Shown here piece by piece: positions 5,500-14,647 of a DNA stretch of 64,000 nucleotides. The notes below the pieces were generated by a model. It was given only the letters and a program-made list of their open reading frames with translations. It was not told the origin of the DNA and ran no database searches. The stretch lies in the NCBI GenBank assembly GCA_025786725.1, contig JAHLTZ010000009.1, positions 620,001-684,000 of the forward strand. The letters are read 5' to 3'. A program made the translations under genes and the position numbers. Position 1 is the stretch's first letter; each line of letters starts with the position of its first letter. This DNA is from Syncephalis fuscata S228. Its lineage: Eukaryota; Fungi; Zoopagomycota.

Positions 5500-7086
5500 A
5501 TGGCTTCTAGTACCACTAAGCAATACGCAACAAGCAGGCTACTAGCTGTAGTTTACCAACTTCCGCCCACCAAACTTACACAGCTTATTCTACATGTTGG
5601 CTTTACTGCAACGATACAACTAAGCCTGAGCTGTCGCACGTTAAAAGAGAAAATACAAGGCGATGTTATATTGTGGCAGTGCCTTTACCAAGATCGGTTT
5701 TTAAATGGACTGCGCCGAGTTAAAGAATGGGATTTTGTGTATTGGTGTGCCAGAGACCAATTTTTAGCCGATAACATGCCGATAGAGTCAACTGCATTGC
5801 TAGAAAAGCTTGATTGGTATGATGTATATCGTCGACGAATCACCACTGAGCAGAACTGGCGTAGTGGCCACTCAAAACGCATTGTATTTTCATATCCTTG
5901 TGGGTGGAAATATAAAAGAATTTCTCTTAAGCAGCTATCTGCGAATGCTGTGCTGCTTTCCAATTTGTACAAAGGCAACGACGATGAGTCAGGCCATAAC
6001 AGTATAGTAGAAAATAACGATGATTTAAGCAATAATGCCATGCCAAAAAAAGTCAAAAGTAGGTTTCAAGTAAATATTCTAGGAACCACGCCAATACCTT
6101 TGGTTATAAACCAGAATGATATTAAAGATACAGCAGAATCAGAAATGATACCAACTATAAAATCCATAGACTTTTATGATAAGCTTCGTGACGGAAGCTA
6201 TGGATTGACTGATCGATTTGCAATTGTGATCAGCACAGAACTAGATGCAAAGCTCATGAGAGTTTACACTCGCAATGACTTTAAGCTACGATACACGTCA
6301 GAGCTACCATCTGATTTTGTTCTTGAAGCAGTCAACGGACAATGGGCTGTATTCTCGCGTAAAGACTGGGTAAAACGTAAAACCCTTCAAGTAATTGCAT
6401 ATGATTTGGAGAAAAACAAGCAGTACGTTAACGAATTTAAAAAGACTATGAGTGCAATTTGCATTTATGAAGCAACTCGTAGCTATGTGACTATATACGC
6501 TATGTTTAATGATGATTATAATTGCAAGCTTCAGTGGAGCTTGCATCGAGTTTCACAAGATGGATTAATGCAAAAATTACAACAAGGAGAATATGAGATT
6601 GGATATAGATCTAACCGTGTCTTTACCACAACATCAGAGTTTTCACATATAAAAGTTAGCACCAATCCCCAAGGATATGACATTTTCCCCCATCTACACA
6701 CACTTTCATTAACAAAAAAAGACGAGATTGAACTAGATGAAATGCACGGAATACCACTATCAGTTGAAGAAAAGGAAATGAGAGGTGTTATTTACTCTGA
6801 ATTGTTAAAGAAGAAGGACTCTGACCACGAAGTATTGGTTTTTAATAATGGCTTTGATTGGTCATCGGTAGTCAAGTATCAGCATATTATTGGAAATCTT
6901 TTCTTTGTTTTTCAGAAAAATAACGAGAATTTGGATCAGTTACTTGTGGATATGAGCTGTGGAAAAGTTATACGAAAAATTGATGCTGTTAATATAAAGC
7001 ATATATTTTATATTTTAATGACAGGCATCATAATTATTGACGAAAATAGTTTGACGATAGAAACAGTTAACTATGGAGCTATTTAG
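5500..7086 (+). CDS. F-box-like protein with divergent beta-rich C-terminus, 528 aa, intronless
   Basis: N-terminal LP..L..L..L..L.LSCR.L.....D..LW..LY...F pattern, followed by LDWYDVYRRRITTEQNWRSG, which resembles the post-F-box helix (W...Y..R...E.NW..G) of F-box/WD40 proteins. Confidence 0.65.
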   Translation: MASSTTKQYATSRLLAVVYQLPPTKLTQLILHVGFTATIQLSLSCRTLKEKIQGDVILWQCLYQDRFLNGLRRVKEWDFVYWCARDQFLADNMPIESTALLEKLDWYDVYRRRITTEQNWRSGHSKRIVFSYPCGWKYKRISLKQLSANAVLLSNLYKGNDDESGHNSIVENNDDLSNNAMPKKVKSRFQVNILGTTPIPLVINQNDIKDTAESEMIPTIKSIDFYDKLRDGSYGLTDRFAIVISTELDAKLMRVYTRNDFKLRYTSELPSDFVLEAVNGQWAVFSRKDWVKRKTLQVIAYDLEKNKQYVNEFKKTMSAICIYEATRSYVTIYAMFNDDYNCKLQWSLHRVSQDGLMQKLQQGEYEIGYRSNRVFTTTSEFSHIKVSTNPQGYDIFPHLHTLSLTKKDEIELDEMHGIPLSVEEKEMRGVIYSELLKKKDSDHEVLVFNNGFDWSSVVKYQHIIGNLFFVFQKNNENLDQLLVDMSCGKVIRKIDAVNIKHIFYILMTGIIIIDENSLTIETVNYGAI

Positions 7087-7650
7087 ACGAAATTTCTGTT
7101 TTATAATATTTCATATAATAAACTATTTATAGGTGCTAAAAAATAAAATACATAAGCAATTTAAATATTATTTACTGGATAAATCTAATGACGTCTATAA
7201 AAACTATACGCTCATATAGTACACAATGATTGATCAAATCCATGGCTGCAATTTAGTTTAGTCAATCATAGTAGGTTTGTATTATTGAATTATTCCAATT
7301 AGTCCGTAATTTTGCTTTAACGTATTTCAAAGCCGCTCACTTATCAACTTCTTTGTTTTTATGCATGCACAATAAACTATGCTTCTATCACATGGCATAC
7401 GGATAGCACACGTACATTGCGTTATCCAATTTAGTACCACTGTCACCCATGTTTGCATTCTCGATATGTATAACAGGTTTAGCATATCGGGCCGTTGAAT
7501 TTCACGTTATAAGCAAAACCTGGTAGCTGTAGATTAGACTTCTAAATTCCATCTGTTTTTCTGTTATTTCATTAATATTGTTTATTTAACATATACCAAC
7601 ATATTTAGTATTTTATACAATATTAGTGATATCTGTACTACGTATCCATA

Positions 7651-8641
7651 ATGCCAATCGTTGATTACGAAGACCCAGCATATGCTGAATGGGCAAATAG
7701 CAGCGTAAAACAGTGGGAAGTTCGCCTTCATCCGCTTGGCGAAACGTATGTATTTGATTTTTTTATGGAAGCCACCGGTGACATTGACAAACAGCGTCTT
7801 CGACTGTTTGGTATACAAGTTCAAATTGTAATGCATGTTATAGTGCTTTATATATTTGCACGCAACCTTGCTATTGCTCGTAAAATGGTCATGCTACTAC
7901 CTCGTAGTCTGATGTCATGGTGCTGTTTAGCTTCCTCAGCCTCAAGTGTCGTGTCCATCACGATGGCTGTATTTATGTTTGTCAATTTTCCTATTAACTG
8001 TCGAATCATGACATGGCTTTTTATATCCAGTATCTCAATTAATATGATGGGCAATAGCTTAATACTCCTTCAAAAGGTTTATCTGGCACTTTGCCAAAAG
8101 AATTGGATAGTCTATATCAGTATCCCAGTAATAGCAGCGCAATTTGCATTCACTTTTATTTTTACGTATAACAGCTATGTTATATTGGAAGAAAAGGTTG
8201 GCTGCATGAATTATTACCCCCAGTTCGTTCTGTGGTACTGGTTCATAGTTAACGTACCAATCAACGTGATATTTTCGGCAATATTTTGCTACATTGCTTT
8301 AAAGCACTATCGTATACTTGGATCAGAAGTATGGAAGCGGTTGGCACGCGATGGGATACAAGCAATGTCTCTGGCTACGTTATGTAACATTATTGGACCT
8401 ATTATTACAATTGTGCCTATAAGCAAAAGCAACACTGATCTATTTTTTCTTATAGATTGGTAAGTGGAAACAGTTGGTTATTTACATGTAATTTATATAT
8501 ATATATAGGATGGTTGTCACAACAATATTAATTAATCATTGCCAGAATGCTAGTAAAAACATTGATACTGCACACAACCCAAAAACCTACCATATGCTTA
8601 ATATATCCCAAATTGCCACCGTAAAATCATTAGACTATTAA
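7651..8641 (+). CDS. 7TM (GPCR-like) family copy C, intact, ~313 aa
   Basis: Uninterrupted exon 1 7651-8459, intron 8460-8508 (GTAAGT...TAG), exon 2 ends TAA 8639-8641. Seven hydrophobic segments; Cys at the top of TM3 (NCRIM) and in ECL2 (VGCMNYYP). Confidence 0.85.
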
Positions 8642-9401
8642 TAAATAGACCTATTATTATTATTATTATTTATGAAAGAATCATAGAGTATTTTCATATC
8701 TACTCGAGCATGGTTGGCATTTACTATAAATCCCCAGGAAAGTAAAACTTTTTACGCAATCAATTGTAATAATTTAGATAGTTGACGAGTTGATTAAATT
8801 AAATTGCGTTTAAATCATTATTCATAACAAATTATAATACTTTAAATAATTTACAGCAACAATAATATGAAATAACATTTATCTATTTATCATATTTTAT
8901 TGTAAGTAACATGGAATACTATTTAATATCTATTTTGATATTAAAAATAGCGCAGATTAATTAAGACTGATTGATTCAATTAAAGCTGATATGACACTGC
9001 TTCAACAAGCCATTTCTTAGTATTAAAAACTAATCGACGATTTATTGTTTGCGTTATTAATTTTTTTTGCCCCCAGTTTAAAGCTAGGGAGTCAAAATAC
9101 AATAGCTTTATATACTAAATGAATACAAATACTTGCTATTTTATGTGTGGGTAATCAACCAATTCTACTTGACTTGAAAAGTGACTTGATTACAATCATC
9201 CTATAGAACTGAGAAACAGAACGCGCATGTGTGTTTTTACACCTATTTAGACGTTGACAAACTATCTTTGTTTTGTCTTATTTTTATTACAATCTTGTGA
9301 GCTGTTTTTGGTGGATGAAACATTATTGGCAGTTTGCTAGCCTGTAGATCTTTTGCAAATCCTATTCTTTGCATTCCACTAAAACAAAGCTATCCGCCAC
9401 T

Positions 9402-12400
9402 ATGGATCACCACGGAGAACAGAGACGAGGACGTAAGTAGCAGCTTATCGCGATATTAAGCCCAGATACCTGGCTATTGTTTGCAACCAAATTGACAATT
9501 ATTTTAACATACTGGTGCAGATGTTGGTCGTAACGCGCATCGTGAAGATCAGCGACGATCTCACCACGCTAAACCTTATGATCGACGCGGCGGTGGCGGT
9601 GGACGTGCAGGTGGAGGTAAACCACATGAATCGCAACAAGAAGAGAGCGCCGAACAGCGTATATCGTCGTTTCTTATAAGAGTCGGTGATAAGGTCGGTA
9701 TCAGTTTGTACAGATGGTATTTAAATTGACAACCTGTACGACATTTAGGTAAATCAAACGTTTAAAGATAGTATGGAAGCATTGGCCAAAATTGTCGATC
9801 GTGAATATCGTCAACACTCGGAATTGATTCTTAAAACAATGCGGGCCTGGTAAATTTGATGATTATAATATGTGGTGTTTATATTGATTATCTACACATT
9901 TGATAGTATTACCGAATTGCCCATGAAATCGGGTATATATGCCACATTTGTTGGTGTTATTAACCGACGATCACCAGATACAGCTGAATTATTTGTACGT
10001 ATGGCGGCCGATGCTTTACAACAAGCATTAAATCGAGCCAATTGGCGTCAAGTGAAAATACTGGTAAATATAACTGTAATATATATATATATATAATTAA
10101 CTTAAATCTACTATACTAGCTTCGTTTTTTTAGTGAATTATTCAATGCTAATGTGATTTCAAATTCGGAATATACAAAGCTTTTGCGTTGTTTTACCACC
10201 GTATTTGAAGAGCCACAACTACGACGTGTAAGTGTAGTATAATATGGGTATAATAATAATAATAATAATAATAATGTTTATAATAATATATAGGATCGTG
10301 CTGATTGTATTGCCTATATACTTATGGATACTTTAGTATATGTACGTTTAACAATTCTATTCTTTCAATTCATACTAATATCTGTTGATTGACAATTACA
10401 GTCAGCATTGGAATTTAAAAAACGCGCATCCACTGAATTAGATGGTGTACTTTCAGTCTTAGAGGTTTATATTCGGGCTCGTCAACAACAACCAGCCCAT
10501 ACCGATATGTTAAAAGTATTCCAAGGACCTGCTGCACCATATCCACAAGAAGAGGTAAAGAATAAACGTATAAGTAATATAATGATTAACTAATAATTTG
10601 ATAGACCATCTTATTGCTATGGCAACAACTAACACAATTACGGGAAGATAATTGGGAACTGCCTATGCTTCCCAAAGTATACACTATAATGGAGGATTTA
10701 TTAGTAAATAACCGCCAGGTAAATAATAATCTATATCAATTATATTCGACACTGTTATTAAAACTATTTAGCACTCTTTACCGGCTATTAAAATACCAGA
10801 TGATAACTTGAATGTAGTATATCCTATATCTAATCTAGTCTTTCGTCTTTTTGCCGATGATCAGGTATATAAACTGAGGTTATAGCAATATTGTTGATAT
10901 GTTAATCATTATACATTTCTAGTCGGCCGCTTTACCTATTTCTATGCCATCTGGTACAGCCATTGCTCGTCACGTATTACGAGACATTATTGTAGATTTG
11001 CTTGAATTATACGAAGTGAATCGAAAGGAATGTCTCAAGTATTTGGTTAGTCTACGAGAATACTTCCAACCGGCCACCTTCTATATTCCTACTCCAGCAA
11101 AGGAAGGAGGTGCTGAAGGAGATGAAGATACAACTATGCCAGAGATTACATCTGACGTAGGTGGATGGCGTTTAGATGCTATTATTATTGAAGTAAGTGT
11201 TTGTAATAAAGAAATAGATTAATACAAATAACATAACAATATATTAACTATTGTATTATTAATTAGATAGTATTGGGTAAATTGTTTGAATTACCAGCAC
11301 CAGAACAAAAACTCGTGTATTACGGTGTTATTTTAATGGAAATGTGTAAGGTTGTTCCGGATACTTTTCCTTTAGTCATATCCTTTTAATGATTATATAT
11401 ATATACCATTATTATTATTACTAAATAGTAATAACAGGTTTAATAGCTTAACTTAATTTATGTACTTTGGACGTGCCATTAGTTTATTATTCGACAGTGT
11501 TGAACAAATGGACGTTGGTTGTATGTATCGATTATGCGACTTTTTCGTACATCATCTAAGTAATTTTGCATTTCATTGGAATTGGTCGGAATGGTAAGTA
11601 GATAGAAGTGTAGATTAACTACAGTATGTATAGCTTATTATGTATTATGTTAATAGGTCATCGGTATTACAGTTGGATAGAACAAATCCTAAGCGTGTAT
11701 TTGTCCGAGAAACACTTAATAAAACAATCCAGTAAGTATTTACAACTATATAATATAATCTAGTCTACTTACACTGGTTTATAGACTATCCTACTACGAT
11801 CGTATTAAGACAAATTTGCCCGAAGAGATGCTTGTTATGATTCCACCAGTAACACCAGGTCCTCGATTCCGGTTTGGTGGACAGGCTGCTGCCAAAGCGA
11901 GTAAGTCAACTTTTGCCCATCATAGTTATGCTAGTTATTACTTTAAGCTAATTATAGATATTAATAGATCCAGAGCAAGTAGCATTAGCCAATGCACTAT
12001 TAGACAAATTGAGAACACGATCTGAACTTAGCGAGGTTCGTGCGCTCTTGAACGAATTTGTAATTGGTAGTGGAGCGGAAGATGGTGGTGAAGATGCTAA
12101 CGGCGCTACTGTGGATGAAGAACGACAACGACTGGCCCGTGAAGTGCTCTTCCAATGTGTACTATTGATGGGCAGTAAAAGCTTTAGTCATATGATGAAC
12201 ATTACAGAACGGTAATTTAGCTTATTAAGCCATGCTGTATACTGATTATAGTACTTTGTAGCTGTCTTCCTTTATTGAAAGAATACTCGGCCGAAAGTGA
12301 ATCTAAACTTCAAGTAATACGCATTGCTGAAGCATTCTGGTTTGAAAACACTCAGGTTGGCTACTATTAATCCATTAGCTATAATGTATATATTAATCAT

Positions 12401-13201
12401 AGTTTTAAATCTTTTAAAACAGTTTTTTGGAATTATTATGGATCGATTCCTTATTTATCGATTAGTAGATCCCATCAGTGTAGTACAATGGCTATTTGAC
12501 GATAAACATATGCCACACTTTGATCGATTCCACTACTGGGTGATAATGCATCGCATGCTATCCAAGGTGGTTAGTAAAGTGCAGGATACACAGAAGAAAT
12601 TGATTCAAGCTCGAGAGGCACACATTACAAATGAATCACGTCGCATGGTAGATGGTAGGTTGTGATGTATGATAAAGTATGTATACAGTATAGGGTAACT
12701 ATTAAACCAATAGTCATGGATGAAGAATTAGAACAACAGCGCATGGAGAAAGAAGCCATTGCTCAGTTGGAATCTACATACGATGCAGTCACTCGTGAAC
12801 AGAAAGAAGTATTTCTTAGTCTATTCCAGGTAAATTGTTTATTAATAGTTGCTAATAAGAATGCTGATTAATAGTTTAATTAATTGTAGAGCTTCTCAAG
12901 AGTTATTACACTTAAGTTGGCTGAATTTGATCAGCAAGGTGTTGACGCCAACACACAGCCATGGTGTTACTGGACTATGGGATGGATGCGTGATTTTGGA
13001 CGCTACGTAAGTGGTTTACGTATTTTAATAGAAATATACTAATTTATCACTTGTATTTAGTACTACAAGCTAGTAGAGCCTTTAGTACCAACACTTTCAA
13101 GCATTGTATTCACCAGTGAAACAGATCCACGTGTCAACCATATATTTGAACAAATATGTCAATTGATAAATGACCGACGAGAACCACTTCAGCTACAATA
13201 A
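9402..13201 (+). CDS. NCBP1: Nuclear cap-binding complex large subunit CBP80 (MIF4G domains), many introns
   Basis: Spliced exons give CITELPMKSGIYATFVGVIN, EMCKVVPDTFPLVFGRAI, HHLSNFAFHWNWSEW, RLSYYDRI and GSKSFSH, all characteristic CBP80 motifs; stop TAA 13199-13201. Confidence 0.92.
11378..11465 (+). other. U12-type (minor spliceosome) AT-AC intron in CBP80, 88 nt
   Basis: 5' end ATATCCTTTT; branch site CTTAAC at 11447-11452; 3' end ...TGTAC. Removal joins TTT CCT TTA GTC|TTT GGA CGT GCC ATT in frame (FPLV|FGRAI). Confidence 0.88.
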
Positions 13202-13309
13202 TGAGTATGGATGCTTGATAGTGTGGAATGAATAAAATGATTTCACGAGATTTATAAATGATTTATTGTCACAAATAACTAAGAAATGTGGAGTTACGCA
13301 CAAGTGCAT

Positions 13310-14647
13310 TTACCGATCATCGGCTAATAGTAAAGTATTACTGCCGTCGCGTGATTCGGCCAATCGTTCAAGGGCAATGACCATTCGTTCAGTGGCCAGT
13401 GTATTACGTTCAGTTAGTTCAAGTAGTCGGTCAAGGCGTTCCTTTAATCCCTCGCCTAATACACGATCGCGTGCACGTTCTTGAGAAAGCCAGTCCACTG
13501 TTGTTGTATTGTCTATATCAAGTAGATTGCTACTTGATTGGAGCCGGCTACGTTTGAATGGACGTGGATTCGCGCTACTACCTCCACCGGTCCCTTGATG
13601 GCTATTGCCTAGTCGGTGAGAATGCTGCTGCTGATGGTGGTGATGAGTTGGTGACACTACTGATTGTTCTATCAGTGTTTCTGCTTGTGAGGCACTGGCA
13701 TCAGCAGATGGATTGGGTGCACTTAGTAGTTGGAATAGACTATCGAGTGTCCTATCATTCGATTCAACATCTTCATCGTCATCTAGACCGACAGCTGCAC
13801 CGGCCGTAACACGCTGTAAACTTGTTGCATCGCCACCAGCGCCTGCATGATGACCATGATGTGATGGATTAGGAATAGTATCAACATCACCAAGTACATA
13901 GGCAAGCTCGTCGTAAAATGGCCACGAGTCAATAATATCCGGACCATTATACTCGTGGCCGGCGGCCAATGCCACGCGATAAGTACGTTGACGTCTATAT
14001 TCGTTTTTAAGATTACGCCATCGCCAGCGACATTGCTCGGCCGATCGCTCAAATCCAAATTGTCGTAAATGATCGCTAAACATACCAAATAAAAAGCCTT
14101 TGTTATGGGCAGATGACTTTAGATCGTCCAGATGGCTAACGGCAATTTCAATTAGTAGGCGCGTTTCACGTTCGCGCCATAACGAGCGTGAATGACCCGT
14201 CTTGCGCTGTTTAATATCCCTATCGGCTAACAAGTCGCCCATTGTACGGCTCGATGACATATTAAGCAGTGATCGGCCATTGCCGGTAGTAGCAGGTGGT
14301 GCGCTATAAGGTACATGTGATGCTTGAATAACCGCCCGTTGACTTTGTGGTGTGTGTGGTAAATGCTGCGCCGACTGTGATGGTGATGGTTGTTGTTGTT
14401 GTTGCTGCTGCTGCTGTTGTTGTTGTTGTTGCTGTTGTACTTGGCGTTGTTCAGTTAGTATTTGAACATCTTCATCTTCATCAAAATCATCCTCTTCGTG
14501 TTCCATATCATCGTTATTATTAATATTGATATCGTTATCTTTTTCATCATTGCCGTTGCCGCCTCGACCTAGTGCACTTCTATCGTGGTGCTCCACGACA
14601 AGCTGCGTCTGAGAGCGACGGCCTGTAGTCACGTTAAGATTATCCAT
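13310..14647 (-). CDS. Myb/SANT-like (trihelix GT-1 type) DNA-binding protein with polyQ and C-terminal coiled coil
   Basis: WRERETRLLIEI...FGFERSAEQCRWRWRNLKNEYRR...WPFYDELAYVL matches the Myb_DNA-bind_4 pattern; 445-aa single ORF. Confidence 0.85.
   Translation of the reverse strand: MDNLNVTTGRRSQTQLVVEHHDRSALGRGGNGNDEKDNDININNNDDMEHEEDDFDEDEDVQILTEQRQVQQQQQQQQQQQQQQQQPSPSQSAQHLPHTPQSQRAVIQASHVPYSAPPATTGNGRSLLNMSSSRTMGDLLADRDIKQRKTGHSRSLWRERETRLLIEIAVSHLDDLKSSAHNKGFLFGMFSDHLRQFGFERSAEQCRWRWRNLKNEYRRQRTYRVALAAGHEYNGPDIIDSWPFYDELAYVLGDVDTIPNPSHHGHHAGAGGDATSLQRVTAGAAVGLDDDEDVESNDRTLDSLFQLLSAPNPSADASASQAETLIEQSVVSPTHHHHQQQHSHRLGNSHQGTGGGSSANPRPFKRSRLQSSSNLLDIDNTTTVDWLSQERARDRVLGEGLKERLDRLLELTERNTLATERMVIALERLAESRDGSNTLLLADDR

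Follow-up and report, generated by a model that had tools for sequence, protein, structure and literature searches.

Positions 11378-11465 of the 64 kb stretch of Syncephalis fuscata DNA analysed here (the window) very probably constitute a constitutively spliced, U12-dependent AT-AC intron, the eleventh of the CBP80/NCBP1 gene, acquired by inheritance. This assignment is based on the sequence signals of the segment, an exact junction in RNA, three minor snRNAs and two minor-spliceosome-specific proteins encoded in the same genome, and the positional homology of introns in other lineages; from these, we infer that the minor spliceosome removes the segment and which adenosine serves as the branch nucleotide. 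The original prediction, that of a U12-type AT-AC intron in the CBP80 gene of an early-diverging fungus that keeps its minor spliceosome, is accordingly supported by sequence, RNA, machinery and homology. Its implied novelty, however, was overstated, as NCBP1 is already listed among the human U12-intron genes (PMC1874599, Table 1), and a survey of more than 3000 genomes has already reported minor introns in Zoopagomycota (Basidiobolus meristosporus, n ~249) and Glomeromycota (Rhizophagus irregularis, n ~205) (PMC10639083). In the same survey, Rhizopus and Phycomyces are further early-diverging fungi with minor introns, and no convincing ones were found in Ascomycota and Basidiomycota (Dikarya); Syncephalis is not named in its main text or in one of its supplements, and NCBP1 is also without an entry in that supplement (PMC10639083). 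The present case thereby provides a well-documented minor intron for Zoopagales, where individual cases have not been described, with evidence from sequence, RNA, snRNAs, proteins and cross-kingdom homology. Nevertheless, the intron is inherited and already implicit in the public annotation, its class is well known, and the phylum was already recorded as retaining such introns; the understanding of minor splicing is left unchanged.

Intron 11 of the CBP80 gene and its excision

The gene is the CBP80/NCBP1 gene, single-copy in type, of the mould parasite Syncephalis fuscata (Zoopagomycota). Its deposited product, KAI9596951.1 ("MIF4G like-domain-containing protein [Syncephalis fuscata]", 873 aa), was recovered in a search of protein representatives as a 100% match to one window exon; exons were searched singly, and this deposited protein was the sole full-length query. 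When it is walked exactly along the window, 870 of its 873 residues are placed in 20 exons at 9402-13198, and the remaining 3 correspond to split codons. Precomputed domains on the protein comprise PF02854, PF09088 and PF09090. In the exon-by-exon search, Pfam MIF4G_like (PF09088) and MIF4G_like_2 (PF09090) were matched by single exons, and the PDB matches of window exons were CBP80 chains only. The protein thus carries MIF4G, MIF4G_like and MIF4G_like_2 in order, together with full-length similarity to CBP80. The features discussed below are as follows.

9402-13201, forward strand: coding part of the CBP80/NCBP1 gene, with 20 exons, 19 introns and 873 codons plus a TAA stop, equal to the deposited protein KAI9596951.1
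11267-11377, forward strand: exon 11, residues 417-453, ending in DTFPLV; its upstream joint, 11192->11267, is GT..AG
11378-11465, forward strand: intron 11, U12-type AT-AC, 88 nt, phase 0, assigned from sequence signals, a spliced contig joint, a composite motif and same-site U12 introns in orthologues
11378-11386, forward strand: 5' splice site ATATCCTTT, which by inspection can pair with the U11 5' end AAAAAGGGG and the U6atac box AAAAGGAGAGA of the same genome
11387-11389, forward strand: TAA in the frame of the upstream exon, read directly from the sequence
11447-11453, forward strand: branch-site-like CTTAACT (CTTAAC at 11447-11452), with the presumed branch A at 11451, 14 nt from the intron 3' end
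11464-11465, forward strand: 3' terminal AC, from the sequence and the RNA joint
11466-11593, forward strand: exon 12, residues 454-496, starting with FGRAIS and containing a conserved HHLSNFxFxWNW block (PF09088, 50.6 bits)

Intron 11, in phase 0, is alone in its AT-AC ends, the other 18 of the 19 CBP80 introns being GT-AG. The exons on its two sides are collinear, without a gap, with the human CBP80 chain 1h2t (residues 336-370, then 374-414) and with PF09088 (positions 75-106, then 111-152). Directly at the exon boundary, the intron starts with ATATCCTTTT (11378-11387), which conforms to the (A/G)TATCCTT form of a U12-type 5' splice site. Toward its 3' end, the presumed branch site agrees with the TCCTTAAC consensus (TCCTTRAY) at 6 of 8 positions; a TCCTTRAY-like element roughly 10-15 nt from the 3' end is the arrangement of U12-type introns, in which a polypyrimidine tract is not required, and no such tract occurs in intron 11. 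An overlapping and weaker candidate, ACTTAAT, would put the branch nucleotide 9 nt from the intron terminus. Upstream of the FGRAI codons, the nearest AG is at 11445-11446, and the downstream frame contains a TAA at 11454-11456; therefore, the frame cannot be restored by any GT-AG pair. Excision of 11378-11465, on the other hand, gives DTFPLV|FGRAIS. All of the sequence statements made beforehand, concerning the start of the segment, the CTTAAC near its end, the AC terminus, the failure of GT-AG sites to rescue the frame, and FPLV|FGRAI upon excision, hold on reinspection.

The octamer ATATCCTT by itself is not unusual, with 3 matches in the window against 3.24 expected. The composite pattern of the 5' site, CTTAAC, 8-16 nt and AC, which was written after seeing the site, occurs once in the window against 0.02 expected, and 11378-11465 is the sole compact U12-like candidate on both strands of the 64 kb.

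Transcript evidence was obtained from the assembled contigs of a single public run (X1, from 2017, with no recorded library type), which contains half of the sampled words of the region. Since its contigs, compared with window positions 8300-14000, are spliced at every intron, they are RNA-derived. At intron 11, a spliced contig has the joint 11376->11465, skipping 88 bases with one ambiguous base (CA..TA or AT..AC), which is identical to the removal of 11378-11465; the other joints listed are all GT..AG (14 of 14). The anticipated junction, 11377^11466, was thus seen in the spliced contig, with no GT-AG alternative there, and the same junction is present in the deposited protein, so that excision at AT..AC ends is found in both. 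Moreover, the depth in the bin 11356-11546 is 220.4, which equals 103/191 of the 408.8 of the single spliced contig; therefore, the intron is retained in no assembled contig, with the qualification that such contigs drop rare forms and show the junction rather than the retention level, the kinetics or which spliceosome acted. Retention would lead to a stop after three extra codons (I-S-F-stop), because of the TAA at 11387-11389.

It had also been expected that standard gene predictors would mis-model this gene. For S. fuscata this is not the case: the FPLVFGRAI junction is present in KAI9596951.1, which corresponds to the window in each of its exons, so the public model already implies the AT-AC intron. 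For its relatives, the expectation is borne out, as the deposited orthologue models of Syncephalis plumigaleata, Geosiphon, Funneliformis, Acaulospora and Paraglomus are faulty precisely at the intron 11 site. In the S. plumigaleata model (L013:2367-2451), 10 extra residues, ISFIVCLFVY, result from a GT-AG intron nested within the U12 intron; in the models of the other four genera (among P0083, P0016, P0021 and P0090), there are insertions or the upstream exon is missing. Since this intron is wrongly modelled in at least five related fungi, pipelines that annotate genomes of early-diverging fungi should permit AT-AC/U12 introns.

A second CBP80 locus was found by searching the genome with the deposited protein. 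This copy, on contig C27 at 5906-10678 (L096, L097), corresponds to window positions 9383-14152; across 4.7 kb or more, with introns and DNA past the gene included, the two sequences share 99.2-99.4% identity. Given this near-identity, the second locus probably represents either a haplotig, left uncollapsed in the assembly, or a duplication of very recent date. Its AT-AC intron measures 91 nt, owing to one extra ATT unit, and carries one substitution besides, with all signals unchanged. The intron interior at 11395-11422 consists mostly of simple repeats, (TA)n and (ATT)n, and the one-unit difference in the ATT run between the two genome copies makes the intron length polymorphic, with the splice signals fixed.

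The homologous boundary in fungi, Capsaspora and an animal

Orthologous loci were fetched, and the homologous boundary was read in fungi, in Capsaspora and in one animal contig. Four fungi, Syncephalis plumigaleata, Basidiobolus meristosporus, Funneliformis geosporum and Geosiphon pyriformis, have AT-AC U12-type introns of 85-86 nt at exactly this phase-0 position, with ATATCCTTT...AC conserved in all of them; the intron of the Basidiobolus orthologue is the very same as intron 11 of S. fuscata. In a non-human animal genomic contig, reached through the cluster members of P0095, a GT-AG U12-type intron of 472 nt lies at the same boundary (GTATCCTTGA ... CTCCTTGAC, 13 nt, AG). The boundary in this contig reads ...PGV|LAQA..., a homologous phase-0 site, and the product family of the contig matches human CBP80 over its full length with 830 bits. 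The search for a U12-type intron at the homologous codon of animal NCBP1 was thus successful, albeit with the GT-AG subtype, so that the fungal introns (AT-AC, ~85-91 nt) differ from that of the animal contig in both termini and length. In Capsaspora owczarzaki, the intron at this position is of U2 type, GTATGT...CAG (L012:2496-2593), and is a likely example of U12-to-U2 conversion. Finally, no intron is present at the boundary in five fungi, namely Mucor lusitanicus, Podila verticillata, Calcarisporiella thermophila, Batrachochytrium salamandrivorans and Geranomyces variabilis.

The occurrence of a U12 intron at the same phase-0 boundary in Zoopagomycota, Glomeromycota and an animal gives this intron an age of at least the fungus-animal common ancestor; CBP80 intron 11 is therefore inherited and not new. 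The simplest reading of these sequences would be one ancestral minor intron whose later history included a change of subtype, a single type conversion and several losses, all of which are familiar for introns of this kind. Accordingly, the states found at this single NCBP1 site, AT-AC in fungi, GT-AG U12 in the animal, U2-type in Capsaspora and clean loss in five fungi, form a textbook-like display of retention, subtype switching, U12-to-U2 conversion and loss. The mammalian NCBP1 U12 intron has its gene family and spliceosome class in common with intron 11 of S. fuscata, and the invertebrate-like animal contig, as the one point of reference, suggests that it occupies the same codon. With the minor introns of other early-diverging fungi, S. 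fuscata shares the consensus signals, the snRNA set (apart from U4atac, not found here, and with U12 as a candidate) and the pattern of few conserved ancestral sites.

In addition to being a minor intron, intron 11 could be regulatory, with slow, rate-limiting splicing that makes the amount of cap-binding complex depend on how active the minor spliceosome is. This is improbable, although several observations are in line with it: the U12 type has been kept at the site in animals, Zoopagomycota and Glomeromycota, retention would bring the translated frame immediately to the stop at 11387-11389, and the minor intron of mouse Ncbp1, where it has been assayed, shows increased retention when snRNP assembly is impaired (PMC8848931). 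However, no retention signal is seen in the X1 contigs, even if these drop rare forms. Moreover, the intron is lost in the five fungi named above and is U2-type in Capsaspora, and it is therefore dispensable; these repeated clean losses weaken the regulatory idea. No regulated minor splicing was found in Rhizophagus, and the survey favours neutral explanations (PMC10639083). A more far-reaching version, that the CBP80 intron belongs to a small core of U12 introns whose codon position has been preserved from before the fungus-animal split, and persists by coupling the production of the cap-binding complex to minor-spliceosome capacity, is somewhat less likely again. The cap-binding complex exports Sm-class snRNAs, including U11, U12 and U4atac, and minor introns of NCBP2 are known. 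If the coupling were true, it would form a feedback loop within RNA processing, and if the mammalian NCBP1 and NCBP2 minor introns followed the same logic, both cap-binding subunits would be wired alike.

Minor-spliceosome components and the assignment of intron 11

Minor snRNAs and proteins were searched for in the 29.4 Mb assembly to which the window belongs, using Rfam and Pfam models with their cut-offs. U11 was found with 47.5 bits against the Rfam cut-off of 39; it begins with AAAAAGGGG and has an Sm site. U6atac, which contains AAAAGGAGAGA, scored 37.8 bits against a cut-off of 33. A U12 candidate with AUGAGUAAGGA and an Sm-like AAUAUUUGG was matched over its full length, but its 34.6 bits fall short of the cut-off of 53. 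All three are enlarged relative to the Rfam consensus (L002:1501-1682, L003:1501-1660, L001:1501-1672), with a hairpin of ~55 nt in stem-loop I of U11, 39 nt in place of the 12 of the model in U6atac, and two inserts in U12. These large insertions, by which the snRNAs of S. fuscata differ from those of other early-diverging fungi, lower their scores. By inspection, the boxes of U11, U6atac and the U12 candidate pair in the usual way with ATATCCTTTT and CTTAAC(T); where CTTAACT meets GAGUAAGGA of the U12 candidate, the branch A bulges out. Among the proteins specific to the U11/U12 di-snRNP, PDCD7 (PF16021, U11/U12-59K family), for which a search had been proposed, is present with 29.2 bits against the Pfam cut-off of 27, and Ubiquitin_4 (PF18036, 25K family) with 38.1 bits against 22.8; the Pfam models of CCDC84 and the zf-U11-48K finger had no match in the genome.

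Retention of U11, U12, U4atac and U6atac had been predicted for this genome, and the prediction stands for U11 and U6atac; for U12 there is a full-length candidate below the cut-off, and U4atac was not found. The U4atac Rfam model, run with default settings and again at E<=10, gave only a 21-bit match at C309:130080 (L004), which lacks complementarity to U6atac. Patterns complementary to stems I and II of the U6atac of this genome and promoter-anchored patterns likewise yielded no U4atac, one overly loose pattern was uninformative with its 853 matches, and the U4 model detected U4 itself and no U4atac. Several individual loci were rejected: L007 is a coding region; L059 and L060 have good stem I/II complementarity on paper, but an AT-rich unstructured tail, and are also without an snRNA promoter motif, Sm site or Rfam signal; and L100, L104, L105 and L106 have no U4atac features and no Rfam match. 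The missing U4atac is treated as a probable detection failure rather than as absence, and the expansion of the snRNAs may account for its escape from detection.

Following the established U12 pathway, the U11/U12 di-snRNP would recognise the 5' site ATATCCTTT via the 5' end of U11, and the branch site CTTAAC would be recognised via the GUAAGGA box of U12. U6atac would then take the place of U11 at the 5' site, and the A at ~11451 would attack, after which the exons would be joined as 11377^11466. Against the U12 reading stand the undetected U4atac, the U12 score below the gathering threshold, the branch site matching at 6 of 8 positions, phase 0, which is the least common phase among minor introns (PMC10639083), and RNA evidence in the form of contigs from one run. 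Some of these points would suit a U2-dependent AT-AC intron, that is, a member of the rare class removed by the major spliceosome despite its AT-AC ends: such ends alone do not define the spliceosome, U4atac was not found, and the branch site is imperfect. U2-type AT-AC introns, however, are without the TATCCTT box. In intron 11, ATATCCTTT is perfect, is conserved in five fungal orthologues and has its counterpart, GTATCCTT, in the animal; the 5' site is also complementary to the U11 and U6atac of the same genome, and the intron has no polypyrimidine tract but a branch motif at 14 nt from its 3' end. Removal by the major spliceosome is consequently very unlikely, and the U12-dependent reading is preferred. 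An artefact, whether from wrongly assembled or sequenced end bases or from misplaced boundaries of a GT-AG intron, has nothing in its favour other than the one-base ambiguity of the RNA joint (CA..TA or AT..AC) and is effectively refuted by identical ends in two independent assembly copies, ATATCC...AC ends in the sister species and three other genera, the lack of any GT-AG pair that restores the frame, and the identical junction in the deposited protein.

The snRNA genes themselves show a further regularity. The U11, U12, U6atac and U4 genes (L001, L002, L003, L063) have in common, upstream of position 1501 of these loci, a motif, TCCCAYRA, with its 3' end 45-64 nt before the RNA start, and those of U11, U12 and U6atac additionally have an upstream AAATAGG box. 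Genome-wide, TCCCAYRA and AAATAGG were found as a pair at 7 sites, whereas the reversed control gave 1+1; the arrangement resembles a promoter of the snRNA type. Four more loci carry the motif pair and belong to no Rfam family, two of them being duplicates of each other; these may represent small RNA genes missing from the annotation, or coincidental matches.

C328:595183-595216, reverse strand: motif-pair locus L104, TCCCAYRA and AAATAGG
C350:153370-153413: motif-pair locus L105, TCCCAYRA and AAATAGG
C355:7923-7961: motif-pair locus L106, TCCCAYRA and AAATAGG
C361:699261-699299: motif-pair locus L107, TCCCAYRA and AAATAGG, ~15 kb beyond the window end

Lastly, two identical copies of another sequence, at C52:16071-16135 and C90:329010-329074 (L067, L070), contain GUGAUGAUGCUUCGGGGUAUCGUC and later CAUGAUGAG, and resemble small RNAs of the box C/D or U3-like kind.
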